NCBI GenBank assembly: GCA_965285935.1
Contig: OZ260665.1
Location: 10,292,001-10,356,000, forward strand
Length of the DNA: 64,000 nt
Source: Ophelia neglecta
Lineage: Eukaryota
Direction: 5' to 3'
Shown here: positions 16,798 through 63,728 of the stretch, piece by piece
Position numbering within the stretch: position 1 is the first letter of the stretch
Layout of the letters: each line of letters opens with the position of its first letter
The notes under the pieces: generated by a model
Told to the model about the DNA's origin: nothing
The model's database searches: none
The model's input: only the letters and a program-made list of their open reading frames with translations
Position numbers and translations under genes: made by a program

Positions 16798-19700
16798 ATG
16801 TCTGCCTTAGGCTTCTGTCTAATGGTCTGTTTCTACTGGACGTTTGTTAGCGTTAACTGTGAATTAGATTCTACAATTCAAGGAAATACGTTCCATGGCG
16901 AATTAAAGGACATCAGAGGCAGAATGCAAATCATGGAGGCAGAAAATAAAGATCTGAGAGACGAAGTCACAGAAATCAGAACCACTATGATAAAGTTGAA
17001 GGACACGTTACTGAGTGAGTAATACTCTTTTGTAAAGTCCGGGTTCGAATCTATATGAACGCCCTTCATTCCAATAATGTATAGATATTATAAACTGTAA
17101 CCACGACAGTGCTTCCTTTTTCATACATATTGACTACCAATCGTCCCACTTTGTTGTAGAACAATTGCCTAATCGGCCAAAGGATATTCCCGACCTGGAT
17201 TTTGGTAAGAAAACGTAACAGTAAAATATAGTTATGTGTATGTATGTATATATAAACATATATATACTCCTGAAGTGCCTGATGAATTTAATAGATATTA
17301 TGCTATGTTTTAAAATGATAGACTGGTTTTTATTTAACAGGCCCGCTGCTCAGAGACTCCAGGGAAGTGACGAAAAAAAGCTACGGTAAAATTAACATAT
17401 CAAACATTCAGCAAATATTATTAGCCAGAAGGATATCAGTCTGTTTAATGTTTTTAATTCTTAATTATCCCCTTCGTGTATATTTGTGTACCACATGGCC
17501 TAGAAACACACCATTTGACATGGCGGGGGAGGGGTGAGGGGGGAGGCTTATGTGGCCTTTGTGCGATCAAGGTGAATTAATGTTCACGCTATGTGCTACA
17601 TCGAAATCTGTTTAGGCAGAGTTCTAGGCCAAGTTTGTTTGTGTTGTAAGAGCAAGGAGACGTAACTTAAACATAATATAAAAAATATATATTTTTGACA
17701 AGTTAGAAATGATGTATTGTTTTCAAAAAACGGATAGACACTCACTACCCATTTTAAGGTGTGTCATTTTTCTATGGTGCCTGCATTTGTCTATGAATGG
17801 ATTCATATCGTAGGCCAAAGAAATGAACAAACATTAAGGCAACTAAATGTTTATCCGACCAAACATATATACGAGTCAATACGCTGTTGACAGCCGTGGC
17901 CTAACGTAGATCCCCTATAGAATTACCATTCCTTAAATCATTTAGGTAGAATCTATTTGCGCTGCTAGTCACGCTTAACATACATGGGAGAAAAACACAG
18001 TTGTGATATAACGTTACATGCTAAATAGTATAGACACGCGAGACGCATTGCAAAGTTAAGAGCTTGTGGCGTCAAAAACCTTGTAAGATGACATCTTTTG
18101 ACATTATTATTCTGTAGCATTCAATTCTCTTTGTTCGATACTGCATCCATAATTTTCATAAACATGTCTATTATATGGTTCAATATCATTTCGACAGCTC
18201 TGATATCTGGGAGTGAACACAATGTGCCAGACGCGTCTTTGACCGCTTCCGCTGTGCATGAAAGCTTAGAAATATACGCCCCTAAATGTTCGAGAATTGG
18301 TGTAACAAGGCCAGGTTGTCATTCTCACCATGCATGGGTTGCAGATAAATCGCAGAAAGAAATGTGGATCCAGGTACAGTAATAAAACAGCCATGGTCGC
18401 TGTAGTTATACAGGAGAAGGTTCTGGTATCTACGCTGAATAAAACTAAATATAACTTGCTCAACTTGGACATCACATCTTGACTTCACCTTCCAATGGTG
18501 TCACAAGCTAACTTTAATCTAGCCAGAAAGAAATGTGGATCCAGGTACAGTAATAAAACAGCCATGGTCGTAACAGCCATGGTCGCTGTGTATATACAGG
18601 AGAATGTTCTGGTATCTACGCTGAATAAAACTAAATATAACTTGCTCAACCAATCAACATGACTTGCACAAACAACTGCAGATAACGCAGTCACGTCCAG
18701 TCCATTGATGAAAACGTACATCGATGTGTTTAAAACACTGGGCAATATGATATATTTTGTCATTTGTTGTAGGTCGACCTAGGAAACACTCACATTATTC
18801 AGGCCGTAGCAACTCAAGGCAGAAGTGTCTTCCATCAGTATGTGACATCATACAAGCTAGCTTCTTTTGATGGCCAACTGGTCTTTTATCAGGATGGAAA
18901 GGTATTTACTAAGGCGAAAAGCAAAATGAACATAAAAGCCACCAAGCGGGTTTGGTTAATAAAAGCAACTGTAAAAAATTTCGCGCGCACTTTATTATCG
19001 TGACTTTCGCGAACACAAGAAACGATTGAAGGGCGTGACATCACGGGTCGATCTGGTATATATTCTCAAATGGGCAGACTCGGCTATCTGTCATATCTGA
19101 GAGCCTCGGTCGAGCGAGCATCGCAGAGGCAACTCCCAATAGAAATCAACTTTAACGAGATATTACAATAATCGGTTGGAAAGGCCTCAATAAATCCACT
19201 GATGACTCAACTTTGATCCAAATACACAATGGTTGACGGTCAAATGCTCTTAGTGCCTCGACAACTTGGCAAACGCTGTAACGGATGAAAATGGCGGACA
19301 ACTTGTTAGTTGTCCAAATGGTATAGAATAGCGCGGCAAACCATCCTTTAATAGGTATTTTCCTTAGTTGACCACCATCATAAAATATTATAGGAATTAA
19401 GACATCAGCAGCAAGCTTTTAATAACCCTGTTTAGGTCAATTTCCACATGTATTATAATATATACTAGGTCATAACACTATTTTTATTTCTAATTGTACA
19501 GACTTGTTAACAACATTCACACAAGACACACGGTTCAGTTCAGGCATGCGTACAGCTCTGTACAGCTAAATTTTTCCTCTATGAAGGGTGTACTAAAACG
19601 GAAGACAGCAATCATATAAATTATCCAAAAGGACTGATAAAAGGACTGATATGTTATTTGTAATACATCTGTAGATTTAAAACATACTTATACTTGGTAA

Positions 19701-20111
19701 AGCTCGGTTTCAATATTTGGTATGACCCATCCCGATGTCGCTGTAGAAAGTTCTAACCATATTGTCTAATAATAGGCCATGAAAACAAGATACGTCCCGT
19801 CCATCACCACCTGACCTCAAACATGGTATTTGGTTTGTAGGGCAAATATTTAGTACCACAAAAATTCATGTTCTGTACTATTTTAAAAGACGTGCTTTCT
19901 TGGTTCATCAAATGATGTAACATTGATCATGCAACACTGAACTATCTGGACAACTTTTCAGGTGTTTGGAGCTAATTCTGACCGGCAGACTGTGGTGAAA
20001 CACGCCCTGAGTCCGACAATGAAGGCTCAGAGGGTTCGACTCTATGTGTTGTATTACAACAAGGTTCCTTCCATGAAATGGGAGCTTTATGGTTATCCGT
20101 GCACATGTTAG
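16798..20111 (+). CDS. Gene A1: secreted coiled-coil + discoidin (F5/8 type C) protein, 238 aa, intact
   Basis: Exons 16798-17014, 17341-17385, 18198-18373, 18773-18901, 19962-20111 (717 nt, GT-AG, phases 1,1,0,0). Hydrophobic leader MSALGFCLMVCFYWTFVSVNC; heptad region; motifs LTAS, AW, WIQVDLG, VATQGR, YVTSYKL, FGANSD, MKWELYG. Confidence 0.9.
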
Positions 20112-21778
20112 GCGTGTAAATATGAAATCAATACTGCTTTACAATACTTAACTATATTTGAAATATATTACGGTCTTTATATAAAACCTCACCTTATATC
20201 AATTATGCTAACCTAATATTCAATCAGAGCACCAAGAATGACTCAATTGTGCCAAAAACTGATTATTCTCATCTTTTAGGTCACGGAGCTGGATTCTTTT
20301 ATTATTGGAAATCCAACAATCCGTTACGGCAATTTTTCTAATTCAATCATATATGAACATTCACAACTGATTTCACGTTATATCAAAGTTTATATAATTG
20401 ATTTTAAACCAGGATGGAGTTCCGTAGTCACAGAGAACACTTATAGATAATTATCTAAAATAGAATATAACCGGAAATTTTTTTCGAGTATGATGTCTGC
20501 TGTAATGCATGTTTTTACCCAAACGCACCATTAACCAATAACATTAGCCTTGATTGCTACCCATTTAAGATATGAAAATAGTTTATTTCAAATCGAAGTT
20601 AACAACTTAGCAAGTAAATTTAGGTTGCACCAAGACGAAAAATGAGTTAAATTCAATAGATATCTAATTTAAGTATAATGTATTGTAAAAGTAATAGGGC
20701 AGAGTTCCTATATGAGGTAACTGCCGCAATAAAAAATGTTTTGTGAATATTTAATACTTGTTTTCATTACCGCCATTTCTACCAATCTATGATTCATATA
20801 ACTACATCTTATGTCTTGGGTGGTGGTTGGATTGTCTGATAATTGTGTGCAACTCATTTGGTGGACATTTCTTTTTGCCAATGCGGAAACATATTAATAG
20901 TTCTATTGTTGCTTCACATATTATATTATAAATGTACAAAGGGGTAGATGAACATGGATATATGTCCTACAAAATAAATGAGATATATTCAATTTGAAAA
21001 CGAACAAAACAAAAAGAACACTACAAAAAGTATCGCATAACAAGGAGGACGAACTCGGAGCAGGTTAAAGAAAACTCTGAGTTTAGAGTTTAAAAATTAG
21101 AAGGTTACAGTATTCGGATGGAGTGGATCAAGAGATCTCTGGTCTCTTCCTAAAAACAATGTGAAAAATTCCACACAAACAACACAGATTTGTGAAGAAA
21201 GGAATTTCAGAGAGGGGTGAGTGCTAATGGTCTATGTTTTTCTGTGACTGCCTGTTAGAATGCATTGGGGCTACGTGCCTAAAGGGTCTTGTGGTACGAG
21301 ATACGAGGGAAATACACAGAAGGTAAGCAGATACAAAACAAAAATAGTTTGAGTTGCTTTGGGACAGAGTAAGAGAGAGGGTTTTGCTACCAACATATTA
21401 ACTGAAACATTTCATTTATAAATCTGATCCCTAGCACAAAGCTTATCCATACATCTACATATAAAGTATCTCGAATCTTCCATTGTGGGTTTAACAGTTA
21501 ACCTTTCCATGTTAATTGGAGGCGGATAAATCACTGTTTGAGCGAGATTACTTATCGGTCCTTGGAGGTCTCTTTGTAATCGAATTCTGATTATTTTCTA
21601 TAAAGGATTCACTTTATGTGTTTTGATCAAATAGGGAAGGGCCAACCATTGAATCGGTCCGAATACTACCGGATCATTAACTGCAAACATCCGCTTATAT
21701 GATATAAGTTCGATCAAACAATATGAACACGTTTATTTTCGCTATGAGTTTTATTGCTTCTTCTATCTTATTTCGTAA

Positions 21779-21906
21779 GTCAATCCAGGCACCACATACA
21801 GAAACCAGAGAGTAGCAACTCATTGCAGGTATGTCTATTCCCAGTTATGACATAATACAACCTCACTTCTGATGATTTACCGCTCGCCTACTATGAAAAT
21901 GGAGAG
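21779..21906 (+). pseudogene. Relic discoidin exon 4 (orphan pseudo-exon)
   Basis: VNPGTTYRNQRVATHCRYVYSQ...LAYYENGE resembles VDLGSTHRIQRVATQGR...VYYQNGQ; 128 vs 129 nt; splice sites lost. Confidence 0.7.
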
Positions 21907-24177
21907 GGATATTTTATACAACCACGCACGGTACATAGATTAAGTTGTGTTAATATGAAAGGTGAGCGGTAATTCCATGAAGAAGAGTATGTTATACCCA
22001 AAGCTTTTTAAAGTGAGACTCGACCATAAATAGATAATTAAAGGAACATTACATTGATGATATTGAACAACAAACTATTTATCATATCATCAATACTGAA
22101 CCTGAAAATTAGATAACTGTTGGTAACAAGAGTCAGAGTACTATACTAGCTGGTTTCCGAGAATCCATTTACAATAGAGTAGTGTTGTATAATTAGATTT
22201 GGATGTTTGAGGTTTAACGATATATTAAAAAATAATACAGTTAACTTGAATCACGTCAAGACATTGACGTTGAAGTCGTTACTAAGCATATGGCTTGACA
22301 AATACTTTAATTGTTGTTTTTGTTATATCTTATCCCATTTGACATTTGTTCTAACTAAGTGTACTCTAAATCCCTGATCCGCGAGCATTTCGTGCAGGCA
22401 CAGAAGGCAAAGTGATAAATCTGTAATAATTCCAGCCACACCATTGACATGTGTGTAGTAGTATAAGTAGTATGTGCAGTAGTATAAGAGATGAATTTAA
22501 ATTACTTATCTGTCCTTGTCATAAATACCACGATTTATGACCCATTTCACGTTCAACGGTGCTTCTGGATATTTGCTTAGCTCCATACGAAGACTTATGA
22601 ATTCAGTAAGTAGATAAAAGTTCTTTGTAAGTCCAATTCGAATAACTTTTTTTTTGCACGCATGACGCATTAACTTTGTTAAGTACATAGAATTATTTAC
22701 CATGCACCGTCTGCAGGTCGCCGGAGCCATTTATTAAGGAAATTGTGATACATTTTCACTTGACGGTAGTGGAGGTCCTTTATGAATTGATTTCTTTGTC
22801 CAGCTTTATATATAAGGCATTAAAGGGGCCGGTGTGTTGCTCGAGGGGAAGCCCCATATACTAGTATTCAAGGTTGTCCGGTAACGCTTTCGCCAACTCA
22901 TACATAGTAATGTTTTTCAGTGCCTGAATTGAAATTTATTGGGTCCATATTCGTTTGACCATTACCTGAGGACTTCAAAATCGGTAGGCCACGATGCGTA
23001 CAACTGGCGCAAAAGTACCGACAATGCTTTGGGAAAAAATATAATATACTGGTTAAATCCAATATCAGAACCCAATGTTAATTGCTGAAGTGAAGCCAGA
23101 AGGCAAAACCACGAAACTTTCCTGTTGCAAACATTTTTACATGTTCTTTTCATTGTACAATATTATATTTAATTCCTTTAAGCAACTTATATATTGCTTT
23201 CAAACAATGATATATGAATAACTGAGTACCTGTCAATGTCAGCTTAGCTCCTCCATTTTAAGTGGCATAGGCAGTGGACGAAAACTGTTTGTTTGCCTTT
23301 AGTGTGTGTTTTATGGTGACCTATTACCTCCACTTGGAGTGAAAAATAATACCCACGAGCCTATTATATGGAGTCTATTGACCTAATTGAGTACTTCTAT
23401 ATATTTACTTAGCTCCATGCCAAGCTCATTACTACTGTCGTTCATAGCAAAAAACGGTCTTGAGCGATCTCTAAATCTGTTTTTGCTATATGTCAAGTTC
23501 ATAAAGGTAGTCTATAGGAAAACACTTTTTGTTCAGGTTAACTTAACGGTCGTGGGACATCTCTTTGTAAAGGAATGTCTGTACAGGTTTTGATCAATAT
23601 AAAAAAGCCTACATTGTGGCCTCTTCCCTGAATACCATGAATAACTTCAATGCCAAGTTTGTTAATCTCGTTCTAAACAAACTTCTCATTGTGAAGTTTT
23701 ACTTTTACGAGCTCTCCTTTGGAATAGATTCGAATTATACTTAATACCCATAAAGGAATCGCTGTAAGGTTTTGATAATAAAGAAGAGCCGGCACTTTTC
23801 AGGAAAGAAAATTAAGTGTTTAACACGTCCAATGTAAACTCGAAAAGTCTCGATTTCTAAATAATAGCAATAGATACTTTCCTTAAAACTAATCAGAATT
23901 TTTCGGAAACATTTAAATTTTCCGGTTATTACAAAATAAACAAATCTCCGTGGAATTGCCTGCTTAACCTACATTGTTGTATTTTCAACAAGACACCTCT
24001 AAACCGTGACAATGTTCAATGTTGTAAAGTATACTGAAATAAAATTCTTGAACATTTCATGGTGGTGTACATTTCTTGATTTACAGTATGATATCACCAG
24101 GTAGCAACGCGGCCGCCAAACAACAAACACGTTGAACTCATTTCGCTTCAGACCAGTGAGACTGATCACCAGCAAGC

Positions 24178-26904
24178 ATGTCTTCCTTTAGCGTCTGTCT
24201 GTTGGTCTGTTTCTATTGCACTCTTGTCAACATTCATTGCGAGTTTGGCTCCAACTTTGAAAAAAGAGTAATGCATGAAGATGAAAAGACAATCGGTGAA
24301 AGAATTGACCCGCTGAATATAGAACTGATGGACGCAATCATTGGAATGCACAAAATAACTAAACAGTTAGAGGCTGCTTTACTGAGTAAGTTAGGTTCAT
24401 TTTTCAATCCTTGGTTGAAGTTGGTATCCAGTATAGTTGTATAATACACACACAGTGTATGTCTTGTCAATATTTGGTCCTCCTATATTCTTTACATTTA
24501 TTATAACTTTTCCATTTTATTGCATGTTGGTTGCGAAACTCCGATTTGACAAAAGGTCTAGCCGACCTAGACCTCATTATAAATAAATTGATTAAGAAAT
24601 ATGGCGTCGGTATATATTTGTTCAATTCCTGAATTTCATAGTAATAATACGTACTTAACATGCTATGCGCAAACTAATTGACTGTATTGTATCTAACAGG
24701 ACAGTCCAGGGAAGTGACGAACAAAAGCCACGGTAAAAATAATATTTTAAACATTCAACAAATGGTAGTTGGTTTAAGGACATCAATCCACGATGTGTAT
24801 CATTCTTTGATAGCTCCTTTTCATGCATATGAAAGCAACACGATGCCTAAGTATAATTTAAAAGGCAATGCGCAATTTTTGCTTCTTAGATTCTTTTTTG
24901 TCCACATGACAAGTTTGTTATTTTGTATGTTATGAACCTATGGTATTAAGCCATTTTTATTATCAGGCAAATGCCATTTGAAATGGGGCATAGGGGGGCT
25001 GAGGGGATACAATCTATCCTCTCATACACATGAATGATTCATACTAGGTCTGTGCTATAAACAAATATTGTTTGAAGGGACTCCACCGCTAACATTAATA
25101 TTGCTTTCCCTTATGGTGCCTGAGATCGTCTATGATTTAGTTTAAAACATGAGCAGCTATAAGTACATACACTATAAGAAAGTAAATATTTACCTAGCCA
25201 GACAAGTAGACATCTAAAGGCATTATCAAACAAGACTACAATATTGGGATATCAAAACCACCATGAAAGGTATATTTGTCACGCTAGACATGCTCCTCAT
25301 ATAAGCACCAAATCGTCTTCTCAATATAGCTTCTGAATATTCAACACATCTGCCATATTGTTAAATCTTGATTCTGGAATAATACTTAACAGCAAGAAAA
25401 TCATTATGTCACAAACATTGAAACATAGCCAAAATTTTAATTAGGTCATAGTTTTACAAGCCTTCTACGCTAGGTTCAGCTTTTTGCTATATCGTATAAA
25501 CCATGGTTACTACTTTGATAAATAAAAGCTTTCAACTGAATAAGATGTATTGATTTATTCCTTCGCAGCCTTGATTTCTGGGACTGAACACCGCGTGCCT
25601 GATGATGCCTTGACGGCGTCTAGCATGTGGGATAACCGGAAAGATTGTGGCCCTCAGTGCTCAAGGCTCGGTGTCCCGAAACCTACAGGTTGTCTTAGCT
25701 ACGCATGGCTTGCAAATAGACTGATCAAAGATTTGTGGATACAGGTAGAAAACAAACAGCGGGTTGCCTAAAAGAAAAAGTAGACAAAATATAAAGTACG
25801 GCTATTTTCATGGTATTTCGACTGTCTTTAGGTTTGGCCATAAAACACGAAAGTGGAAGTTGAGATCGACCAGTCCAGTGTAAATTCTGCTCAATTTGTC
25901 AGCAACCAGATAGAATATAGGCAAAACAAGATAACTCTTTGTGTAACATACTATTTACCAAAGTGTTTCACAATGAATATATGATTTCAGTAATGTTTGA
26001 ATTCATTTAATTCGGCGTTATAAGCTAAATCCTAAGAAGCGTAATGCAAAGTCCACATTGTATTTCACATAAATATAGTTTAAAATAATAAGCATGCATA
26101 CAGTAGCCAGATGTTCAAGGATCTACCATTCATTCTGTTCGAAGATTTCAGCGGTTCTTATATAAACTGCACAGTTCTTCCGTTTCCACATGGTTTCGGT
26201 TTGCTTTAATTGATTATTCTAAATAAATAACTTTGCTTTTTTTCTGCCCGAGTATTCACTTTCGTTGTTTTTAGCTGATTAGAGATATTTTGTCAAGTAT
26301 TATTTATATTTTAATTTTTGCAGGTTGATCTTGGCTCAACACACATAATCCAGAGAGTTGCAACCCAAGGCAGAGATATCGGTGACCAGTTTGTGAAATC
26401 ATACAAACTGGCGTATCTCGATGAAAAGCTTGTCTACTATCAGAATGGACAGGTAACTTATATAATCGCAAGTTTAATCACTAAACGTGTTTGGCTTAAA
26501 TTGGTCAAACGGGCTGAACAGGTTACCATGGATGCGATCCAATAATATTAGCAAATATTGCCTTTCAACATACAGTTGTCGCTAATGTTGACTTAGAAAT
26601 TCCAGATATGTTCGCAATCTAATTTGTCCACCACATATATCTCAGATAGTGGCTGCCTGTGCTTTGACTTTAACCAATGCTTGAAGCGGGACTCGACCGT
26701 GCCGACTGTACTTGTAAACCTTAAACACATGACCCTTCAATTTGTTAGGTTTTCCCTGCAAATTCAGTCCCGGAGGCTGTTGTGATACACACACTGACTC
26801 CCACAATGAAGGCTCGAACGGTTCGACTCTACGTATTGAATTACAACAATAACCCTTCTTTGAGATGGGAGCTCTATGGTTACCAGTGCACGTGCACGTG
26901 CTAG
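24178..26904 (+). CDS. Gene B1: secreted coiled-coil + discoidin protein, 233 aa, intact
   Basis: Exons 24178-24385, 24700-24732, 25569-25744, 26324-26452, 26749-26904 (702 nt); same intron phases as A1; ends WELYGYQCTCTC*. Confidence 0.9.
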
Positions 26905-27722
26905 GTGCGTACGCATGCGAATAATAGTTTCTAAAACGCTTAACAAAATTTAAAATCTTATACTATTATAGTTAGCCACTGACAGATATTACCCTGCATA
27001 TTTGAAATTAAGATAGCAGATACTAAGCGGTGTGAATACTGAGATACTTTCTCTTTATTACTGACGCATTCGGAGACAATTCTTTTCGTCCTTTCAGCTA
27101 CCGGTAGTGGTCGTCCATTTACAAGGAATCAACTATTACTGTTTTGAAAGCTTACATCAATAATATAATAGTGCTATTGAATAAATAAGTTCTATATTTG
27201 ATATAGTAGCTAACCCCACTGATCATGAGTGGTGTGTTTTACCGTGACCCAGCCAGATGTAGTAAATTCCCTATGACTCATTGCCCAACATTGTATTTAT
27301 CGCAAAACGTGAAGAAAATAAAGTCCTTAGTTCGAACCAAAAATTAAGAACAAACAGAAATTGGGTTATTTCTTCAGAATCTAACTTTAAATAAAAAGCG
27401 CCCAAAATTGCACGTAACAGGAAAAATAATATAATTATAGCTCCTGTCCGAAGTCAACGGTAAATATTACCAATATATTGATTGCTATGTCATAAGCTTT
27501 AAGTATACAAGAAAATAGATAACAATGCATTTAATGTGTAATGGATTATTAATTGATTTATGTCTTACTTCTGAGGGTTTTTTTTCTAATCACAATTTTG
27601 ACAATGTTTATCATCTATAAAAGAGGGACTCGCTTTATTATAAATAATTTTGATCGCGTCTGGTTCTTGTTAAATATTCAGTGATGCATAATACATGAAA
27701 TTATTTGGCCAACATTTATATA

Positions 27723-27901
27723 CTGTGAAACCTGTCTTAAAGACCACCTCTATAATCAGACCACCTGTCTATTCAGACCAATAATTTAAGAACCCAGTTG
27801 AACACTTACAATGTAAAAATAGCCTGTCTATACAGACCACCTCCCTTTTCAGACATGTATTTGCCAGTTCCTTATGTGGTCTTAATTCACAGGTTTCACT
27901 G
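27723..27901. mobile_element. Tc1/mariner-type MITE (copy 2)
   Basis: Near-identical to 14868-15046. Confidence 0.75.
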
Positions 27902-29635
27902 TATACGCAAATAACCACTAATAAGAAATGTTCGCGATGTAAGATCCATGGCCATTTCGGGATCTGATGATAAAAAGAGAAGTAGTGATCGCTTTCTGCT
28001 GTAGAATTTACTGATTTTACACGATTATACAGCCTACATTAGCCTATATCAATTTGAATTACTATTTTATTTCAATAAACCAATGATATATGTCCTATGT
28101 ACAAGGAGCGGTACTTCGCGAAATTTACTTACCCTTACCCATGCCATGTACAAGGCATTCATTCATAGGTCAAGACTCTTGTATGTCTTCGTTAATCCGA
28201 TTTGAATACCTTCATTGATGATATATTTTGAAATAGAATAAAGATATATCACAAATTGAAGGACTTGAAGTATTTACCTCTCTACATTTCTAGGCCATTG
28301 TATTCAAAAGCTGTTTAAGGCGGTACTCTTGAATCAATTTCTTTGGCCAATGTCATATAAAAGGCCAACATAGAAGTATTTACCCGATAGTGTAATGTCG
28401 AAGCGCGATTTTAAGGTAAATGTTTGCCAAGCATAATATAAACCCCTCATATCCAAACGTCTATAGGGTAGCAAAAGAGATACAATTTTCGCCGGGTTAT
28501 ATTGTCAACCTGGACATTTTTATTTGTAAGAATAACTAAAATAATAGGCTCATATTAGAAAATATTCTTTCTTTTCACAACAGCATTCTATATAATTCTG
28601 GAGAGGAAATCAATTCCTAATTACCTACTTCCTATCATAGCATATAAATTTCCTTCTACCTGATTCCTATCATAGCTAGTCGCTTCCTAACTGCTTACTT
28701 CCTATAATAGATTCCTATCTATCTCCTTTCAATTCCTTCTTAATATGTACATAGCGTCAGTCGAACTATAATGAATTCATTAAAGATCAAACATAAAGTG
28801 GAGTTTATCCAATTTGAATAGCAAGGATTTCGCAATGAAAAGAAAGCGCATTAAATGCGTGATGTGCTTCAAATCATTTGCACTTCTCGTATTCCAGGCC
28901 ATTGTAGCTATTTGCATTGAAAACTGCTTGTAAATCTTCACTTGAAGGTAGTGGTGGTCCTCTGTCCAAATAATGACTTATCTCGCTTTTATATAATGCT
29001 GACATATATGTGTTTACATATATATTTAAACGCTAAAGTAAACACTACGCACCTGGCGTGTATTCTGTGAATATTTATTAAGCTGAAGTTAAACCAACAT
29101 GTCAAAACTTCTATAGGATAGAAATAAATACTTTGAAATACAAGTAATTGTAAACCAGAATAGTTTTGCTCTTAAAAATATGTTTTCGTATGTAGTTATG
29201 AAGGCAACATTCGCCGGTTGCAAGTCGCAATAATATCCATGTGAAGATAACCTAGTTAGGCCAAACCTATCACAGAAGTCAATTACTATCCAGATATATG
29301 GTAGTACATCAATTTCTATCTACTTACTTTCTCACACAATAAATCAATTCACATGAACCTACTTTCTATCCTAGTACATCAGTTGCTAGCTATTTAGCTC
29401 CTATCATAGTAAATCAAGCCCTAACAATCTTAACCCTGTTATAGGAAAACAAAACATATTTATTCAATAATTCCTGTCTGCTCGTAAATGTATCCTGGAC
29501 AAGGAAATCAGCGACATTTTCCCTTAGTCGAAACATACATGCTTTACAGTATGACTCTAAGTGAGCAACTGTTTATATACAGCAGGCAAAGTCACTTCAT
29601 TTGACTTCAGACCTGCCAGAATCAACTACATCAAA

Positions 29636-32600
29636 ATGTCTGCCTTAGGCTTCTGTCTACTGGTCTGTTTCTACTGGACGCTTGTTAGCGTTAACTGTGA
29701 ATTAGATTCTACAAATCAAGGATATACGCTCCATGGCGAAGTAAAGGACATCAGAGGAAGTGACAGAAATCAGAACCACTATGATAAAGTTGAAGGACTC
29801 GTTACTGAGTGAGTAATACTCTTTTGTAAAGTCCGGGTTTCGAATCTATATGAACGCCCTTTATTCCAATAATGTATAGATATTATAAACTGTTGCCACG
29901 ACAGTGCTTCCTTCTTCATCCATGTTGACTACCAATCGTCCCACTTTGTTGTAGAACAATTGCCTAATCGGCCAAAGGATATTCCCGTCCTGGATTTTGG
30001 TAAGAAAACGTAGCAATAAATTATAGTCATATATACTCCTGAATTGCCTGATGAAGTTAATAGATATTATGCTATGGTTCAAACTGATAGATTCGTTTGT
30101 ATTTTACAGAACCGCTGCTCAGAGACTCCAGGGAAGTGACGAAAAAAAGCTACGGTAAAATTAACACATCAAACATTCAGCAAATATTATTAGCCAGAAG
30201 GATATCAGTCCGTTTAATGTTTTTAATTCTTAATTATCCCCTTCGTGTATATTTATTTACCACATGGCCTACAAACATACCATTTGATATGGCGGGGGAG
30301 GGGGCGAGGGGGAGGCTTATGTGGCCTTTGTGCGATCAAGGTGTATTAATTTTCACGCTATTTGCTACAACGAAATCTGTTTAGGCAGAGTTCTAGGCCA
30401 AGTTTGTTTGTGTTGTAAGAGAAAGGAGAGGTAACTTAAACATAATATAAAAAATATATATTTTTGACAAGTTAGAAATGATGTATTGTTTTCAAAAATC
30501 GGATAGACAATCACTACCAATTTTAAGGTGTGTCATTTTTCTATGGTGCCTGCATTTGTCTATGAATGGACTCATATCGTAGGCCAAACAAATGAACAAA
30601 CATTAAGGCAACTAAATGTTTATCCGACCAAACATATATACGAGTCAATACGCTGTTGACAGCCGTGGCCTAACGTATATTCACTATAGAATTACCATTC
30701 GTTAAATCATTTAGGTAGAATCTATTTGCGCTGCTAGTCACGCTTAACATACATGGGAGAAAAACACAGTTGTACTATAACGTTACATGCTAAATAGTAT
30801 AGACACGCGAGACGCATTGCAAAGTTAAGAGCTTTTGGCGTCAAAAACCTTGTAAGATGACATCTTTTGACATTATTATTCTGTAGCATTCAATTCTCTT
30901 TGTTCGATACTGCATCCATAATTTTCATAAACAACTCTATTATATGGTTCAATATCATTTCGACAGCTCTGATATCTGGGAGTGAACACAATGTGCCAGA
31001 CGCGTCTTTGACCGCTTCCGCTGTGCTTGTAAGCTCAAATTATACGCCCCTAAATGTTCCAGAATTGGGGTAACAAGGCCAGGTTGTCATCCTGACCACG
31101 CATGGGTTGCAGACAAATCGCAGAAAGAAATGTGGATCCAGGTACAGTAATAAAAAAGCCATGGTCGTAACAGCCATGGTCGCTGTGGATATGCAGGAGA
31201 AGGTTCTGGTATCTACGCTGAATAAAACTAAATATAACTTGCACAACCAATCAACATGACTTGCACATACAACTGCAGATAACGCAGTCACGTCCAGTCC
31301 ATTGATGAAAACGTACATCGATGTGTTTAAAACACTGGGCAATATGATATATGTTGTCATTTGTTTTAGGTCGACCTAGGAAACACTCACATTATTCAGG
31401 CCGTAGCAACTCAAGGCAGAAGTTTCTACCATCAGTATGTGACATCATACAAGCTAGCTTCTTTTGATGGCCAACTGGTCTTTTATCGGGATGGAAAGGT
31501 ATTTACTTAAGCGAAAAGCAAAATGGACATATAAAAGCCACTGAGCGGGTTTGGTTACTAAAAGCAACAAACCCATGTCACTCCACACCTCCAAACCCTA
31601 TGATGATGCAGATGACTTATTTCGTGAATTCTATAAAACCCATCCACCCGTACCATTCTCCACAAGATAATCAATATCCATGTATTGTCAAAATGCTATC
31701 GTATTTATTAGCAGCCCGTACCGTCCATCGAAAATGGCTCATATTAATAGAACGGCGGAGCATCCGATCCCAGTGGTGAGCCTTCCATTGTAATCTTGCG
31801 AATGGCAAAAGAATGAAATATTCAAAGTCGGTTTCACAAACTATTTCTATGTGAGCCACAATTATGAATACCATGGTGCGCTTAATCGAACCGGAATGTA
31901 TTCAGTTGTGAAGTTCTAAGGTGTGGGTCACCTTAACAAGTGAGAAATCTGCGTTAAAACAATGTTGTCTGTAACCAATTGCAGACGAACTGCTCCCGAT
32001 GCGGTCACACTAAACATCGAAATCCCCGAAACCCACCGAAACCGACCTACAACTAGTGATATTTGCGGCATATAAAAACCCGTGTATACTACACACTAGC
32101 ATACACTAGTTTTCCAATCATTTGAGATATCTTTTTTGGCATTATAACGACACTTTTGTATCATTATTATCGAGACACGAGTGCTGCCCCCTGTTGTCTA
32201 TTAGGACACACGGTTCAGGAATGCGCGCAAATCTATAGAGTTGATTTCTCCCACTATGAAGTGTTAACATAATCGAAAGACAGCAATCATATAATTTATC
32301 CAAAAGATAAAAGGACTGATATGATATTTGTAGTTTCCGCCTTGGCATCCCTATCTTGACATTAATACTTGGTTAAGCTCGGTTTCAATGTTTAGTATGA
32401 CCCCTCCGCCATGGTAATAAGTAGTATATGCTGCGTCGTACCGATACTTTCTAGTTTGTGTTGTGTATGTATCATTGTTGGCTTGTAAAGTTTGTTTGTG
32501 TTATAAAGTGTCATCGTACATGTCGGTAGATTCTCGGTGTTGGTCAATTATACAAGTTACTGGCGCTCCCGATGCCGCTATAGAAAGCACTAGCCGGGTT

Positions 32601-32942
32601 GTATAATAATAGATCATTAAAGCAAGATACATCCCGTCCATTACCACCTAACCTCAAACATTGGTTTTTAGGGCAAATATTTAGTGCCACAAAAATTCAT
32701 GTTCTGTACTATTTTAAAAGACGTGCTTTCTTGGTTCATCAAATGATGTAACATTGATCATGCAACACTGAACTATCTGGTCAACTTGTCAGGTGTTTGG
32801 AGCCAATTCTGACCGGCAGACTGTGGTTAAACACGCCCTGAGTCCGACAATGAAAGCTCAGAGGGTTCGACTCTATGTGTTGTATTACTACCAGCACCCT
32901 TCAATGAAATGGGAGCTTTATGGTTATCCGTGCACATGTTAG
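29636..32942 (+). pseudogene. Gene A2: frameshifted paralog of A1
   Basis: Exons 29636-29808 (44-nt deletion), 30110-30154, 30967-31141 (1-nt deletion), 31370-31498, 32793-32942; spliced frame reaches TGA at ~30983. Confidence 0.85.
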
Positions 32943-34497
32943 GTGTGTAAGTATGAAATCAATACTGCTTTACAACACTAAACTGTGTTTAAAATATATT
33001 ACGGTCTTTCTATAAAACCTCACCTTATATCAATTATGCTAACCTAATATTCAATCAGAGTACAAGAATTACTCAATTGTGCCAAAAACTAATTATTCTC
33101 ATCTTTTAGGTCACGGAGCTGGATTCTTTTATTATTGGAAATCCAACAATCCGTTACGGCAATTTTTCAAAATCAATCATAAATGAACATTCACAACTGA
33201 TTTCACGATATATCAAAGTCTATATGATTAATTTTAAACCAGGATGGAGTTCCGAAGTCTCAGAAGACACTTAAAGATAATTATCTTAAATAGAAACAAC
33301 ATAACCCGAATTTTTTTCGAGTATGATCTCTGCTGTAATGCCTGTTTATACACAAGCACACAATTAACCAATTAATATTAGCTTTGATTGCTACCTAATT
33401 TAAGATATGAAAATAATTTATTTCAAATCGAAGTTAACCACTTAGCAATTAAATTTAAGTTGCACCAAGAAGAAAAATGAGTTAAATTCAATAGATTGAA
33501 TGATTTAAGTATACATGCATTGTAAAACTAATAGGGCAGAGTTCCTATCTGAGGTAACTGGCGCAATAATAAAATGTGTTGTGGATATTTAATACTTGTT
33601 TTCATTACCGCCATTTTTACCAATCTATGATTCATATAACTACATCTTATGTCTTGGGTGGTGGTTTGATTGTTTTATAATTGTGTGCAACTCAATTGGT
33701 GGACATTCCTTTTTGCCAATGCAAAAACATATTAATAGTTTTATTGTTGCTTTACATATTATATTATATATGTACAAAAGGGAATTGAACATGGATATAT
33801 GTCCTACAAAATAAATGAGATATATTCAATTTGAAAAGGAACAAAAACACCTAAAAGAAAAAAAGAACACTATAAAATTATCGCCTAACAAGGAGGACGA
33901 ACTCGGAGCAAGTTAAAAAAAACTGAAGCTGAGTTTAGAGTTTAAGAATTAGAAGGTTACATTATTCGGATGGAGTTGATCAAGAGATCCCTGGCCTCTT
34001 CCCAAAAACATTGTGAACTGCACCATGTTACAATTTTGTCAATAATAAAATTCCACACAAACTAAACAGATTCGTGAAGAAATGAATTTCAAACAGGGGT
34101 GAATCTTGCTAATGGTCTATTTATTTTCTGTGACTGCCTGGTAGAATGCATTTGGGCTACGTGCTTAATCCATATACCTACATATAAAGAATCTCGAATC
34201 TGCCATTTTGGGTTTTACAGTTAACCTTCCATGTTTATTGGAGGAGGATAAATCACTGTTTGAGCAAGATTACTTATTGGTCCTTGGAGGTCTCTTTGTA
34301 ATCGAATTCTGATTATTTTCTATAAAGGATCCACTTTATGTGTTTTGATCAAATGGGGAAGGGCCAGCCATTGAATCGGTCCGAATACTACCGGATCATT
34401 AACTGCAAACATCCGCTTATATGATGTAAGTTCAATCAAACAATATGAACACGTTTATTTTCGCTATGAGTTTGATTGCTTCTATCTTATTTCGTAA

Positions 34498-34625
34498 GTC
34501 AATCAAGGCACCACATACAGAAACCAGAGAGTAGCAACTCATTGCAGGTATGTCTATTCCCAGTTATGACATAATACAACCTCAGTTCTGATGATTTACC
34601 GCTCGCCTACTATGAAAATGGAGAG
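34498..34625 (+). pseudogene. Relic discoidin exon 4 (duplicate of 21779-21906)
   Basis: Near-identical copy in the second duplication unit. Confidence 0.7.
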
Positions 34626-36884
34626 GGATATTTTATACCACCACGCACGGTACATAGATTTAGTTGTGTTAATATGAAAGGTGAGCGGTGAAGAAGAGTA
34701 TCTTATACCCAAAGCTTTTTAAAGTGAGACTCGACCATAAAAAGATAATTAAAGGAACATAACATTGATGATAATGAACAATAAACTATTTTATTTATCA
34801 TATCATCAATAATGAACCGGAAAATTAGATTACTGTGAGTAACATGTGTAAGAGTACTAAACTAGCTGGTTTCCGAGAATCCATTTACAATAGAGTAGTG
34901 TTGTATAATTAGATTTGGATGTTTGAGGTTTAACGGTATAGCTATTGAATATGAAGACAGTTAACTTGAAGCAATTCAAGACATTGACGTTGAAGTCGTT
35001 ATTAAGCATATGGCTAGACAAATACTTTAATTGTTTTTTTTTTTAAATCTTATCCCATTGGGTATTTTTTTATTCTAGCAGGCACAGAAAGTGCTAAATC
35101 TGTAATAATTCCAGCCATACCATTGACATGTGTGCAGTAGTATAAGTAGGATGTGCAGTAGTATAAGAGATCAATTTAAATTAATTTCTTTCTTTGTCAT
35201 GAATATCACGATTTATGACCCATTGCCCGTTGAACAATGCATCTCGATATTTGCTTAGCTCCATACAAAGACTTATGAATTCAGTAAAAAGTTCTTTGTA
35301 TGCCTTTAAGTGCCGTGAGTCCTATTCGAATAACTAGTTTTTTTGCAACGAAATGAAAATATATGAGGCAATAACTTTGTTAAGTACATAGAATTATTTA
35401 CCTCTCACCGTCTGCAGGTCGTTGGAGCCACTTGTGAAGGAAATTGTGATACATTTTCACTTGACGGGAGTGGCGGTCCTTTTTTTAATTAATTTCTTTG
35501 TCCAGCTTTATATACAATGCATTAAAGGGATCGGTGTGTTGCTCGAGGGGAAGCCCCATATAGTAGTATTCAAGATTGTCCGGTACCGCCTTCGTCATCT
35601 CATACATAGTAATGTTTTTCAGTGCCTGAATTGACATTTATTGGGTCCATATTCGTTTGACCATTACCTGAGGACTTTAAAATGGGTAGTCCACGATGCG
35701 TACAACTGTCGCAAAAGTACCGACAATGCTTTGGTAAAAAATATAATATACTGGTTAAATCCAATATTAGAACCCAATGTTAACTGCTGAAGTGAAGCCA
35801 GAAGGCAAAACCACGAAACTTTCCTGTTGCAAACATTTTTACATGTTCTTTTCATTGTACAATATTATATTTAATTCCTTTAAGCAACTTATATATTGCT
35901 TTCAAGCAATGATATATGAATAACTGAGTACCTGTCATTGTCAGCTTAGCTCCTCCATTTTAAGTGACATAGGCAGTGGACGAAAACTGTTTGTTTGCCT
36001 TTGATGGGTGTTTTATGGTGACCTATTACCTCCACTTGGAGTGAAAAATGATACCCACGAGGCTATAATATGGAGTCTATTGACCTAATGGATTACTTAT
36101 ATATATTTACTTAGCTCCATGCCAAGCTCATTACTACTGTCGTTCATAGCAGAAACGGTCTTGAGGGATCTCTGAATCTGTTTTTGCTATATGTCAAGTT
36201 CATAAAGGTATTCTAAAGGAAAACACTCTTTGTTCAGGTTAACTTAACGGTCGTGGGACATCTCTTTGTAAAGGAATGACTGTATAGGTTTTGATCAATA
36301 TAGAAAAGCCTACACTGTGGCGTCTTACCTGGAAAACACGAACAACTTCAATGCCAAGTTTGTTAATCTCGTTCTAAACAAACCCTTTTGTGATTTTTTT
36401 CTTTTACGAGCTCTCCTTTGGAATAGATTCGAATCATACTTATTACCCATAAAGGAATCGCTGTAAGGTTTTGATAATAAAGTAGAGCTGGCACTTTTCG
36501 GGAAAGAAAATTAAGTGTTTAACACGTCAAATGTAAACTCGACAACTCTCGATTTCTAAATAATAGCAATAGATACTTACCTTAAAACTAATCAGAAATT
36601 TTCGGAAGCAGGAAACATTTAAAAAATTCCGGTAATTACAAAATAAACAAATCTCCGTGGAATTGCCTGCTTAACCTACTTTGTTGTATTTTCAACAAGA
36701 CACCTCTAAACCGTGACAATGTTCAATGTTGTAAAGTATACTGAAATAAAATTCTTGAACATTTCATGGTGGTGTACATTTCTTGATTTACAGTATGATA
36801 TCACCAGGTAGCAACTCGGCCGCCAGGTGACAGGCACGTTGAACTCATTTCGCTTCAGACCTGTGAGACTGATCACCAGCAAGC

Positions 36885-40597: not shown

Positions 40598-40776
40598 CTG
40601 TGAAACCTGTCTTGAAGACCACCTCTATAATCAGACCACCTGTCTATTCAGACCAATAATTTAAGAACCCAGTTGAACACTTACAATGTAAAAATAGCCT
40701 GTCTATACAGACCACCTCCCTTTTCAGACCAGTATTTGCCAGTTCCTTAGGTGGTCTTAATTCACAGGTTTCACTG
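40598..40776. mobile_element. Tc1/mariner-type MITE (copy 3)
   Basis: Near-identical to 14868-15046. Confidence 0.75.
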
Positions 40777-45897: not shown

Positions 45898-48559
45898 ACA
45901 TATAAAATAGCTGAATTACAATGCAATTCTATTTTAATGTTAATTTGACCATTGTGTCACTTTGAATCAAATTCGAACTTTTACTTTCGAGATGTCGATT
46001 TACTGAACTTAAAAGAAAGTATATATTGATGTTTTGGATTATTGGTACATAATTCTTTTGCAAAATCGCATTATTAAATGAAGAAAGTTGGCCACATCTA
46101 GTATCTGTTGGTCATATGTGCATTGGACTTTCCAATACATACGGTTACTAAGTGGTATGGACATATATATTTAGACCTACGCCTGTTATTAATGTATTGA
46201 ATTCTTCCAAATTTTAACACATTATAACATATTAATACAGTTATATTATTTTACAGATTGAATACATCTTATGTCAATTTTTGTTTTAAAAACCAGAAAA
46301 TCTACAAAAAAATGCAAAATTTAATTGAAAATATTCTATTTACGGATGTTTGCTTGTGACTCCTCCGGCGTCTTATCATGGTGATACCTACATCTCTTGA
46401 TGAAGGGGGATTTGGCACTTGGCCTAGCAGCAGCCTTGCATCGCTCGCACAATTTGGCTCGGAGTTGATTTGCGAGAATCATCTCATTCAGTTTGGGTTA
46501 AGCAAGGGGCCCTTGTATCCTCAATAGACTTCACCTCCACCAAAAGAGAGAACAGTGATTGGGATATTTCTGTTTTGAACAAGGAAAAAAGTTTATTGTG
46601 CAACTCAGCTCCGTAACGTTGCTGGGGCAGGGCCAACGCATGTAATCACATGAAAACTATTGTATTTTCCATCGTTTGGCTTTCCTTTTTATCTACTTAT
46701 GGGGCAGGGCCCAGATGCTTTATATTGTCTTTGACTGATAAAAGATTATCCCCTAAGAAAGCAGTTAGCATTTGAAAGAGATCTCAAAAACTCCTTAAAT
46801 AACCTAGTAATTACTGTTCGAAATATGGTCGAGAGGCCATGTAGCAGTGGCGGATCCAGGATTTCAGAAAGGGAGTGGGGGGGGGGGGCAAATTTTCCAA
46901 GGCTGACAAAGGCAAATCTCTAGATTGTCCCCGTTACCAACCCACTGAAACCACTTTGCGTGGGTCAAGGGGGGCGAGGCCACTGATGCAGCCTAATTTT
47001 CAAATTTTAAAGTTTATAATTAGCATGAGGCAATGAGATAAGGCGATAATTCAATAACTTGAAGCAAAACAATGAATCACAAAGGAGTTATTCTACAACC
47101 AGATTTATAATAATCAAGTAATACGTGTTAAAGTACCATGAGTTAGCTGATTTACAGCTCACTTATTCTATCTTCACAAAATTTGGTAATAGTTTTAAAC
47201 TAAAATAGCCTGGTGACGCATTGGTTTTCTTCAAGTTATTCAAGTGGGGGCATCATGTAAGTGCCTCACATCAATAATAAACAAAATTCGACAGTTGCAA
47301 ACTTGTTTAACTTATTTTTCCATCGGGACCTTAATACGCAGAAATAAGGAAGTCCAACCCGCGACTAAGTCGGTGCATTATCACTGATTTGTTTTTCTGT
47401 CTCTTATCCACTCAAGTTTTCTTTGGTAGTCAACACCATAAGTTTGGAACCTCGGTGCGTTATAGCACACGAGAGTTTCAAAACAAGTGCCTAGGCTGTG
47501 TCCACATACATCAAATGCGTTCTGGTAACAAAAGGGTCAATCAGTTGACCTTGAAACACACTATCTGAAGGTTAAAGTACATATCTCAGATGGTTTGTTT
47601 ACAAGCGTATTTACAGCACAGCTAGTACGTTTGTATTCTGTCAGCCTGAATATCAGGTCAAAAATGAAAATATACTTTACTTACGTTATATAACAATTTT
47701 GTCATATTTTAACTATTGTGTTGAGGTCTGGAGTTCTGCTGCTAGATATTTACTCGATTTCCTGTTTAAACTACAGAAAAAGGTTGTACGTTTTTTAACC
47801 TTTTTTTTTCAAATTTACGGATCATACCGGGCCGATTTTTAAGCAATGTCGCCTTTTAGAACTAGACAATATTTAACAATTTAGAATCTCATTATTCATG
47901 TTTAAATTATCTAAAAATATGTTACCTCCTGTTGTTTGGTAGGAAATGTTTAAATTAAATAGTGACATAAATTGCTACTGTACTAGACGTAGTTTACCCG
48001 ATGTTTATATTTCATGCAGTGCGAAATTATGCTTGATACCAGCATACATTGCAGTTATAGTAGTTACCATGTTTTTAAGCTGCTGGCCTCGCCATGTGGT
48101 CATGCTGGCCTTGCCATGTGGTCATGCTTGGCTAGCCATGTGAACATGCTCTGTTGTTGTTTTGGTCTTTATCTACATAGACACCCAGCATGCATTATAT
48201 CCAATGATGTTAATTTGTATACTAGTGCTGACCAATAGGGTGTCAATGCTTTACTTGTTTTTTTAAGTGTTGCCGTATGGGAATTTGCACTGTTTAAAAT
48301 CAAAAGCTCACAAGATTCTGATCAGGAAGGATGTGTTATAGGACATTCTAGCTAAGGTTTGTCAAGCCAATTTGTATTTGCAGTGTTGAGAAGGTCCAAT
48401 TGTTTAACACTGTACTGTGACAGTCGTGCATGTTATTTTGGCTGTATTTAAATCAAATGGTTGGTCTTGCTTATAGATCAGTATTGAATAGCCACATCCC
48501 CGAGGCTCTCGTCCGGCCTAAGACATTCTAATTCTAGCTATGATGTTTTTGTAATGTTA

Positions 48560-61550: not shown

Positions 61551-61842
61551 GTCTAAATATATATGTCCATACCACTTAAGTAACCGTATTGGAGAGTCCA
61601 ATGCGCATATGACCATAACATACTAGATGTGGCCAACTTTCTTCAATTTTCATCCAATATACATAAAGCGATTTTGCAAAAGGATTATGTACCAATAATC
61701 CAAAACATCAATATATACTTTCTTTTTAATTCAGTAAATCGACATATCTGAATCAAAAGTTCGAATTTGAATCAAACTGACACAATGGTCAAATTTAAAA
61801 TATTAAAATAGAATTGCATTGTAATTCAGATATTTTATATGA

Positions 61843-63728
61843 TTAACAGTCGCCTTGATGACCATACAGCTCCCATCTCAAGCACGGACACCAGTTGTAG
61901 TACACCACATACAGTCGAACCCTACGAGCTTTCATTGTGGGACGAAGTGTCTGTCTGACCATAGAGTTCATGTCCGAATTACCACCAAATACCGGAAATA
62001 ATCATAGGAAAGCCTTATTAATGTTCATGTGCATTTTGCAAAACAAGTTAGATATTTGCTCATCAAACTATGTATTTATTAAAATAAACAGCTAGAAAAT
62101 AATTATTAGCGAGTTCCCCTGCAATAGCCGTTGGGACAAGTGTTGTTATTTTTTTTACTTAAGGGTGCCTTTGCTAGAACTATTAGTTTTAAATTGAGGT
62201 ATTTCCTATCCAATTTTACTGGATTCTACCATTAAGAATAGGCCAAGCAAAGCGCTGGAAGGTGCTGCAGCGGTAGGGCTTTAATACAGCATAATAAAAA
62301 ACCCAACACATCCTGCTTTACAACAATTTGTACTACAATACGGCCACAGTTCATGGTGCAGGCCAAGATAGCGATTGGCGAGGGTTTTGCTGGATTACTA
62401 TATTGCCAGAAAAAAAACTGTTCAGCAAGCTGTGATCTGCCGGAAGTAGTTTATCACGCCGAACCAAATAATCCCACGAATTGGCAATAATTTCGGAACA
62501 GCTAACCGAGGCCGGTTAACCATGTCGCCCTCACGTGCGCTCACACGTGTCAACAGTATTTATAATGCATAAAAACAACCCAGAAACCATCGGCTACATC
62601 AGCGGGGTGTCTTGGTAGGCTCCATACTGACAGCCAGCAAAGTATAAGCCGATAGTTTTGTCACCAGGTTTTTGGATTTGTCCGCGCAATCGGCGATATA
62701 GGATACTGGACCTGCTAATTTCAGCAGAACAGATGCAGATTGCTGTAGAAATGAGACCAGTCTAAATATCCCAACCGCAGGCCAACACAGAATGGTCGTT
62801 AAATGAATGTTTCAAGATAACCTTATGTCGCTCAGATATTTGATCCAAATAGTAGCGAAGCTCATTTCCGTCGTAGGAAGCTAGTTTGTATGAAGTCACA
62901 TATTGGGAGAAAGGGAGATCTCCTCTCCCTTGGGTGGCTATGCTGTCAATTGTCATGAATTTCCCGAGATCAGCCTAAAACAAATAAAGTTTCAACAAAA
63001 AATACCATGAAAAAAAAGCAAATTTGAATTATATAGGTGCGATGAGAGTGTTTGGGAAAGTTTGGGGTTAAGGGGATGGTTTGGGGCGGTGGGGGCTGGG
63101 GGATTAAATCATGGTCTAAAAACGTAATAAGTAGGGACAAATGCACCCATGACCCTTGTTTTAATCCCTATATTTTTAATTATGACGCGATGACTTGGAC
63201 TCAATTACAACAATTGCGAAACGATAGCCTTCGCTTAAGTACCATGTGTGCACCCCGGCGAATTTGGCTAGGTTCCAATGGTTTGTATGTAAAGCTGGGA
63301 CATTGGCTTTTAAGTCGAATTTCTCCTGAATAGGTAGCATTTAGAGGATTTGTGGGAAAGTAAATAATATCATCGCAATGTTTTATTTGTTTGAAAATAA
63401 CTAGATAAATTTCGCATGGCAATGAACCCGCCACCTAAGTCGTTTGAATGTTTGTCAACCTACTCTAATCTCATATACATTGGTTAAATGCAGTGATATT
63501 GGCATATATGCTTGTTGGTATTAAGTTACATTAAATTTGCTTGTTGACTTCTACCGAAAGAATCCATTCCTATCCGAGGGCATATATCTAAAGAAGTACA
63601 ATGAAGGGTATTTACATTTGAGAAAGACAAATGTTTGCTTACAATCGTGCATTAAAGTTTGCTGAATACTTGAAGGTTTTTACCGTAGCTTCTTTTCGTC
63701 TTTTCTCTGGAATCTCTGAGCAGATTTC
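61843..63728 (-). pseudogene. Gene C2: inverted paralog of C1 lacking exon 3
   Basis: Exon 2 63728-63684, exon 4 62974-62822, exon 5 61992-61843; ~1.3-kb deletion (C1 ~43146-44445) removes exon 3; exon-5 acceptor AG mutated to CG; exon 1 lies beyond the window. Confidence 0.85.

Follow-up and report, generated by a model that had tools for sequence, protein, structure and literature searches.

A cluster of predicted secreted discoidin-domain genes with coiled-coil stalks in Ophelia neglecta

Introduction

What is encoded by the repeated sets of short exons that run along a 64,000-nucleotide stretch of Ophelia neglecta DNA (GenBank assembly GCA_965285935.1, contig OZ260665.1, positions 10,292,001 to 10,356,000 of the forward strand; this whole stretch is hereafter the window)? 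A prediction made earlier from the letters alone (the original prediction) had placed here, at 16798-63728, a hidden cluster of secreted proteins that combine a coiled coil with a single discoidin (F5/8 type C) domain. Domains of the discoidin type are familiar, nearly always as parts of large multidomain proteins; their fold is an eight-stranded distorted beta-barrel that carries loops ("spikes") at one end. Among small secreted proteins that have a single discoidin domain and work as oligomers, retinoschisin is the chief example.

Here we report that the window probably harbors a real, small multigene family, whose members are separately transcribed and encode secreted proteins of ~230-245 residues. 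Oligomerised through their stalks, these proteins would act as multivalent extracellular binding proteins in adhesion or recognition. Intact frames, conserved splice sites and the ratio of non-synonymous to synonymous substitution rates (dN/dS) suggest that the family is expressed.

Six gene copies share one five-exon plan

The letters of the window are complete (no N; G+C content 33-45%). We searched all of it for copies by six-frame self-comparison and by tblastn with candidate exon open reading frames (ORFs). Exactly six collinear sets of exon-like ORFs were found between 16798 and 63728, with A1, B1, A2, B2 and C1 on the + strand and C2 on the - strand. Four copies are intact and two are broken, the number that the original prediction had given, and its end coordinates are exact as well, 16798 being the ATG of A1 and 63728 the start of the C2 micro-exon.

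16798..20111, + strand: A1, intact, 238 codons; exons 16798-17014, 17341-17385, 18198-18373, 18773-18901 and 19962-20111 (including the stop)
24178..26904, + strand: B1, intact, 233 codons; exons 24178-24385, 24700-24732, 25569-25744, 26324-26452 and 26749-26904
29636..32942, + strand: A2, broken copy of A1; five exon homologues, 93.5-97.7% exon identity to A1
36885..39783, + strand: B2, intact, 231 codons; exons 36885-37092, 37407-37439, 38362-38531, 39203-39331 and 39628-39783
42067..45897, + strand: C1, intact, 246 codons; exons 42067-42283, 42606-42650, 44184-44359, 44652-44804 (weak donor GTTATA) and 45748-45897
61843..63728, - strand: C2, broken inverted copy of C1; micro-exon, exon 4 and exon 5 kept, 93-98% identical to C1

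In A2 the frame is broken twice, by an indel in exon 1 and by another in exon 3. C2 is missing ~1.3 kb that C1 has, and exon 3 is lost with this stretch; the expected position of the C2 exon 1 lies past base 64000, outside the window. In the rest of the window tblastn detected no further copy, except for a weak exon-5-like stretch in intron 2 of C1 (43452-43511, + strand; 40-45% identity over 20 residues, E ~0.04-0.06), which may be the relic of an older copy.

Checking the boundaries base by base, we found that all four intact copies follow the same five-exon plan that had been proposed, with canonical GT-AG introns throughout and identical intron phases of 1, 1, 0 and 0.

Exon 1: 208 or 217 nt; start codon, leader and stalk; ends in phase 1
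Exon 2 (micro-exon): 33 nt in B, 45 nt in A and C; basic linker; ends in phase 1
Exon 3: 170-176 nt; first part of the discoidin domain; ends in phase 0
Exon 4: 129 nt, 153 in C1; middle of the discoidin domain; ends in phase 0
Exon 5: 147-153 nt plus stop; end of the discoidin domain and cysteine tail

The commonest intron donors are GTGAGT, GTAAGT and GTAAAA, and the least certain boundary is the exon-4 donor GTTATA of C1 and C2. At intron 3 of A1 (18338-18560) the 3' end of exon 3 and its donor are present as a ~186-bp local tandem copy. A2 has this repeat in single copy, and in A1 the frame is kept only via the first donor.

Each of the units begins with an ATG of its own and a hydrophobic leader, and in B1, B2 and C1 in-frame stops lie a few codons upstream of that ATG. 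Likewise, exon 5 of each unit reaches a stop at the homologous place, directly after the domain. Thus, each unit with its own start and its own stop is a separate gene and not a group of exons of one long gene.

Exons 3 to 5 form one discoidin domain

Our searches used single exons, or alignments in which each exon forms a separate row. In A1, B1 and C1, exon 4 matches positions 39-74 of PF00754 (19.2-24.3 bits) and exon 5 matches positions 87-127 (16.7-22.6 bits). The two matches are collinear; each alone is under the 28.2-bit cutoff, and their rough sum per gene is 35.9-46.7 bits. The prediction of a single F5/8 type C domain spread over three exons was therefore right, the PF00754 check having been made exon by exon and the collinear summed bits exceeding the cutoff. 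Exon 3 alone has no Pfam match and pairs with nectin repeats directly upstream of the exon-4 match (E 1e-9). Exons 3, 4 and 5 of B1 align in order with residues 836-882, 883-912 and 935-978 of Paracentrotus lividus nectin, in its repeat 6; over nectin repeats, other repeats included, exons 3-5 show 39-57% identity (E 3e-11 to 8e-7).

The same three exons together tile one domain of an uncharacterised Owenia fusiformis protein (CAH1791241.1, here P0027, 217 residues) at 33-47% identity. The profile of this alignment matches, among structures in the PDB, the C domains of FVIII and FV, neuropilin b1/b2, lactadherin C2, discoidin-2 and retinoschisin. We modeled P0027 as a proxy, with the window exons as alignment rows; the model (predicted local distance difference test, pLDDT, 87.9) consists of a helix at residues 27-56 and a barrel. 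The top fold matches are FVIII C2, lactadherin C2 and neuropilin b1, to which the barrel can be superposed at target template-modelling (TM) scores of 0.77-0.87, reaching 0.87 for neuropilin b1 and FVIII C2.

A profile of exon 3 was compared with 1.84 billion representative proteins and matched 33 of them at E <= 0.001, mostly short ORF fragments from unannotated contigs. When 14 unrelated fragments were aligned with the stop-to-stop ORFs of the window, similarity began at A-L-I-S-G and ended at W-I-Q, as exon 3 does. In 13 of the 14 the residue that follows W-I-Q is valine, as readthrough of a GT donor gives, and complete divergence sets in after it. The shared start and end of similarity indicate that both bounds of exon 3 are common to relatives elsewhere.

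Among relatives of 120-380 residues, the profile search found no full-length close relative and no named family; the matches in this size range are Owenia paralogs, unnamed fragments and coral proteins with a factor V-like annotation. Likewise, we found no description of a coiled-coil and discoidin family or lectin in the open-access literature. The original prediction had not recognised the proteins as a named family, and neither the database nor the literature searches give them a name. The best named relatives among the 1.84 billion representatives are multi-discoidin proteins of echinoderms, namely P. lividus nectin, Strongylocentrotus purpuratus proteins annotated as Notch-like or lactadherin, and proteins of Diadema and of the crinoid Anneissia. 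The relatives point to a marine invertebrate. A venom or toxin role, which had been listed among the possible functions, is unsupported by any match.

A predicted leader and heptad stalk precede the domain

The strongest hydrophobic 12-mer of the exon-1 products lies within residues 1-17, and the leader ends in an invariant cysteine, C21; by the -3/-1 rule, cleavage would follow this residue. From about residue 28 onward a single heptad register is kept, in which 10-11 of 12-13 a/d positions are hydrophobic as against 33-43% hydrophobic residues overall, and 36-42% of the stalk residues are charged. The heptad helix of exon 1 covers ~45 residues, about six heptads. For the four exon-1 products AlphaFold predicts a single helix at residues 2-71 (mean pLDDT 82, and 86-93 in the heptad part). 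Pfam searches of the stalk returned only weak matches of coiled-coil type (bZIP, FlaC). One core position is occupied by an asparagine (N50 in A1 numbering) in all four intact copies.

The micro-exon adds 11 or 15 residues with a net charge of +2 to +4, and the segment ahead of the domain consists of a cysteine-free heptad helix and a basic linker. Hydrophobicity, heptad count, predicted helix and exon boundaries together bear out the anatomy first proposed, a signal peptide and heptad-like stalk followed by a basic micro-exon. The micro-exon of C1 (42606-42650) contains a K-x-K-R motif, where A1 has K-K and B1 and B2 have no such motif. Speculatively, the motif of C1 could be a convertase site that separates stalk and head; it is not conserved.

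The classical disulfide is missing

In retinoschisin (RS1) a canonical end-to-end disulfide, C63-C219, joins the start of the domain to its end, as it does in factor V (PMC4728063). In every copy in the window the micro-exon and the first 25 residues of exon 3 hold no cysteine, and hence the classical cysteine at the domain start, and with it the end-to-end disulfide, is absent. The repeats of nectin are likewise without this bond (PMC10057474), indicating that the end-to-end disulfide is not universal.

Other cysteines are present. Exon 3 has a C-x(10-11)-C pair, which recurs in most of the close fragments and is absent from nectin and from the Owenia proteins; we infer that it links two loops in the manner of C110-C142 of retinoschisin (PMC4728063). 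The B and C copies have one further cysteine. At the C-terminus the cysteines lie at least two residues after the conserved Y-G and not directly after the G, and they number one in C1, two in A1 and three in B1 and B2. Since they have no partner at the domain start, these tail cysteines would be available for bonds between chains and may cross-link them.

Local duplication and selection on the protein

Self-comparison of the window with blastn reveals two kinds of duplication, listed here together with the conserved blocks upstream of the genes.

14670..41599: tandem duplication with a period of ~12.85 kb, one A and one B gene per unit
42334..46176, + strand: left arm of an inverted duplication (C1 unit), 89-97% identical to the right arm
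61551..64000, - strand: right arm of the inverted duplication (C2 unit), running past the window end
16690..16797, + strand: promoter-proximal and 5' untranslated blocks conserved upstream of A1, with equivalents upstream of 24178, 29636, 36885 and 42067

The tandem units span 14670-27520 and 27524-40410, followed by the partial start of a third at 40415-41599, and are 90-95% identical. The family grows and decays by local duplication, tandem and inverted events having produced six copies of which two are broken.

Comparisons of A, B and C with each other give a dN/dS of 0.29-0.36 at a dS of ~1, indicating long-term purifying selection on the protein. Blocks within the ~100 bases upstream of the ATGs are also conserved across A, B and C (81 of 210 columns invariant in five upstream regions), although synonymous sites between the three are near saturation.

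The young pair B1/B2 differs by 5.7% in exons and by 7.4% in introns, with one gap, in frame, in the exons against 12 gap events in the introns. Four short segments, which vary most in the set of paralogs as a whole, hold the in-frame gap and several of these differences. Two of these segments align with the FVIII C2 loops L2251/L2252 and W2313-H2315, which are named in the titles of PDB entries. An R-G-D tripeptide is present in exon 4 of C1 (44652-44804) and of C2 (62822-62974), in the loop aligned with the L2251/L2252 spike of FVIII C2. It could be an integrin-binding motif, or it could be chance beside the conserved G-R.

Comparison with characterised proteins

Retinoschisin (224 residues) is the nearest characterised protein in working design. 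Its octamer depends on cysteines that flank the single discoidin domain, and the octamer is needed for galactose binding (PMC4728063). RS1 and the window genes are alike in size and have in common a leader, an N-terminal oligomerising segment (predicted here), a single discoidin domain and a C-terminal cysteine. In contrast to the window genes, RS1 has an Rs1 domain in place of a heptad helix, forms an octameric ring by C59-C223 disulfides and keeps C63-C219. In sequence, the likeness is confined to the domain and is weaker than that to the FVIII and FV C domains, with no sign of orthology.

Nectin, a protein of the sea-urchin extracellular matrix, is secreted and has 984 residues with six discoidin domains; it is the sole confirmed adhesive or cohesive protein of sea-urchin tube feet (PMC10057474). 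P. lividus Pl-nectin (UniProt Q70JA0; P0004/P0034 in our set) resembles the predicted products of the window genes in being secreted, in its discoidin subtype and in lacking the end-to-end disulfide. Its six domains stand in tandem with no coiled-coil stalk, and it is thought to dimerise via a single cysteine. Each window gene, in contrast, joins a single domain to a heptad stalk by a basic linker from the micro-exon and ends in a tail with cysteines.

The order of parts in the window genes is the same as in the uncharacterised Owenia proteins (P0027; P0169, 231 residues; P0021), which have a signal peptide, a helix of 25-35 residues and one discoidin domain that opens with the same L-I/V-S/T-G motif. 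The family had been called lineage-specific, a description that this shared part order in Owenia fusiformis does not bear out. Unlike the window genes, the Owenia proteins keep the canonical pre-domain cysteine and the terminal G-C, have cysteines flanking the helix and are without the C-x(10-11)-C pair.

The expanded FReD and C1q lectin families of lophotrochozoans combine a signal peptide, a coiled coil and a globular head (PMC8878817). Collectins, ficolins and the coiled-coil C1q/FReD lectins of molluscs likewise have the leader-stalk-head design and local duplication, on heads that are unrelated (C-type lectin, FReD, gC1q). The comparison with collectins, ficolins and C1q-domain proteins made in the original prediction is thus reasonable as far as design goes (PMC8878817) and does not extend to the heads; the likeness is one of analogy and not of homology. 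By profile and by proxy fold, the C domains of FV and FVIII, lactadherin C2, neuropilin b1 and the Dictyostelium discoidins belong to the same domain family as the window heads. The heads of FV/VIII, lactadherin and neuropilin sit in large multidomain proteins, and the discoidins pair their domain with an H-type lectin domain. The ligands of the FV/VIII-type, neuropilin and discoidin domains (phosphatidylserine, VEGF tails and GalNAc) are not transferable to the window family.

A proposed multivalent binding protein

We propose that the leader is cleaved, and that the heptad helices would pair or bundle in parallel, bringing at least two discoidin heads into each particle. The ligand of the heads would be an extracellular glycan, lipid or protein, contacted by the variable loops that lie at one end of the barrel, and multivalency would raise avidity, as in retinoschisin, collectins and the coiled-coil C1q/FReD lectins. 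The likely role would be extracellular adhesion or recognition in a marine invertebrate. This functional reading is plausible, with adhesive or matrix use at least as likely as immune recognition; the lectin and immune roles put forward in the original prediction go further than these results. The design is a known one in a new combination, in which the discoidin head has no classical disulfide and is carried by a coiled-coil stalk, and it involves no new principle. Such a family would bring a further type of head to the stalk-plus-head design found in expanded lectin families of invertebrates, and it would offer a compact, tractable model for how new specificities arise in discoidin loops. 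Its practical value is moderate, as a candidate family of adhesive or recognition proteins from a marine invertebrate. Such genes are missed by current annotation, and public protein collections hold only single-exon fragments of relatives.

Several points weigh against the proposal. Protein profile searches, those of the 1.84 billion representatives included, found no full-length database protein, transcript or peptide of the family. The signal peptide, the coiled coil and the oligomer state are all predicted, and the evidence for the domain fold comes from the Owenia proxy P0027 and not from the window's own protein. The stalk of the window genes has no significant similarity to the Owenia stalk (BLASTP E 0.21). 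Two of the six copies, A2 and C2, are dead. The dN/dS of B1/B2 is 1.01 (33 non-synonymous and 9 synonymous changes), which relaxed constraint fits as well as diversification. Differences between B1 and B2 are weakly enriched outside the strands, at 14/73 against 6/62 in the columns of the proxy model (p = 0.15), and therefore we do not claim diversifying selection.

Of the other explanations, the one with most to be said for it, which we hold possible but not likely, is that the genes encode nectin-like components of a coat, mucus or temporary adhesive, which would cross-link matrix rather than sense microbes. Among named proteins, the nectins of echinoderms and their multi-discoidin relatives come closest, discoidin domains recur in the temporary adhesives of several phyla (PMC10057474), and C1 and C2 carry R-G-D in a predicted surface loop. 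However, identity to nectin repeats is only ~40-57%, over single exons, and the architecture differs, with one domain and a stalk as opposed to six domains. A lone R-G-D can, moreover, be chance beside the conserved G-R of the domain.

It is rather doubtful that the proteins are diversifying immune pattern-recognition lectins, a discoidin counterpart of the coiled-coil C1q/FReD proteins with positive selection in the binding loops. The design is that of secreted lophotrochozoan lectin families in which a coiled coil takes the place of collagen (PMC8878817), and the local duplicates undergo birth and death. The dN/dS of ~1 in B1/B2, together with differences and an in-frame indel in segments aligned with the membrane-binding loops of FVIII C2, would fit such selection, but the enrichment in loops falls short of significance (p = 0.15), neutral drift would equally lead to a dN/dS of 1, and only six copies are present in the window. 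Likewise doubtful is a reading of the family as uncharacterised coiled-coil-stalked discoidin lectins that have swapped the classical disulfide for a loop-bridging pair and a free tail, and whose loops diversify for multimeric pattern recognition in a marine invertebrate. If true, the family would stand beside collectins, ficolins and mollusc C1q/FReD proteins as their discoidin counterpart.

That the cluster is decaying, its copies in the window being once functional and now unexpressed duplicates that drift to pseudogenes, seems improbable. Two of six copies are indeed broken, the B1/B2 dN/dS is ~1 with exon divergence (5.7%) close to that of introns (7.4%), and the databases hold no annotated or transcript-derived product. 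Yet four copies keep all splice sites, start, stop and frame over 231-246 codons, and the exons of B1/B2 have no frame-breaking gap where the rate in introns predicts about four gap events. The upstream blocks, too, have been kept in paralogs that have reached saturation at silent sites.

The least probable explanation by far, that the units are exons of one long nectin-type multi-discoidin gene, takes its appeal from the multi-repeat discoidin proteins among the nearest relatives and from five units lying head to tail on one strand, but it is contradicted by the ATG and hydrophobic leader of each unit, the upstream in-frame stops in B1, B2 and C1, the stop at a homologous position in each unit and the spacing of 2.2-5 kb with conserved upstream blocks. 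We reject it on its start and stop codons; the original prediction had itself named exons of one longer multi-domain gene as an outcome that would overturn it.

Neighbouring elements in the window

Between C1 and C2 lies a cytochrome P450 gene or gene fragment (51060-55076, - strand). Its exon ORFs at 51991-52137, 51404-51634 and 51060-51356 match, in order, positions 235-378 of PF00067, and likely N-terminal exons were located by eye at 54837-55076, 54383-54664 and 53598-53759. No heme-binding exon of this P450 was detected.

A long terminal repeat (LTR) retrotransposon of the Ty3/gypsy type ("K02A2.6-like") occupies 56430-59961 on the - strand, between the arms of the C1/C2 inverted duplication. 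Its terminal direct repeats are 97-100% identical, and it encodes protease, reverse transcriptase and RNase H domains. The copy is incomplete, since its pol frame has one stop and no integrase domain was found in it. The retrotransposon ORF is 60-72% identical to ENA contigs, with named matches at ~45% in scallop, fishes and oysters.

A run of long ORFs (73-278 residues) on the + strand at 2300-8330 gave only weak matches, to an OTU-like protease and to DUF6589, and may represent the pieces of one large gene, either transposon-like or an orphan. The ORF of 278 residues (3216-4052) has no relative among 5.8 billion proteins. A search of the window against Rfam gave no match.

A PHD-finger-like ORF is present at 10301-10555 on the - strand; the regions 10301-10849 and 13931-14427 are diverged copies of each other with ~79% DNA identity, 3.6 kb apart. 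Just upstream of the tandemly duplicated block, at 12268-13124 and 13519-13843, lie a 158-bp satellite of ~5 copies (91-94% identity) and adjoining 16/32-bp microsatellite-like arrays.

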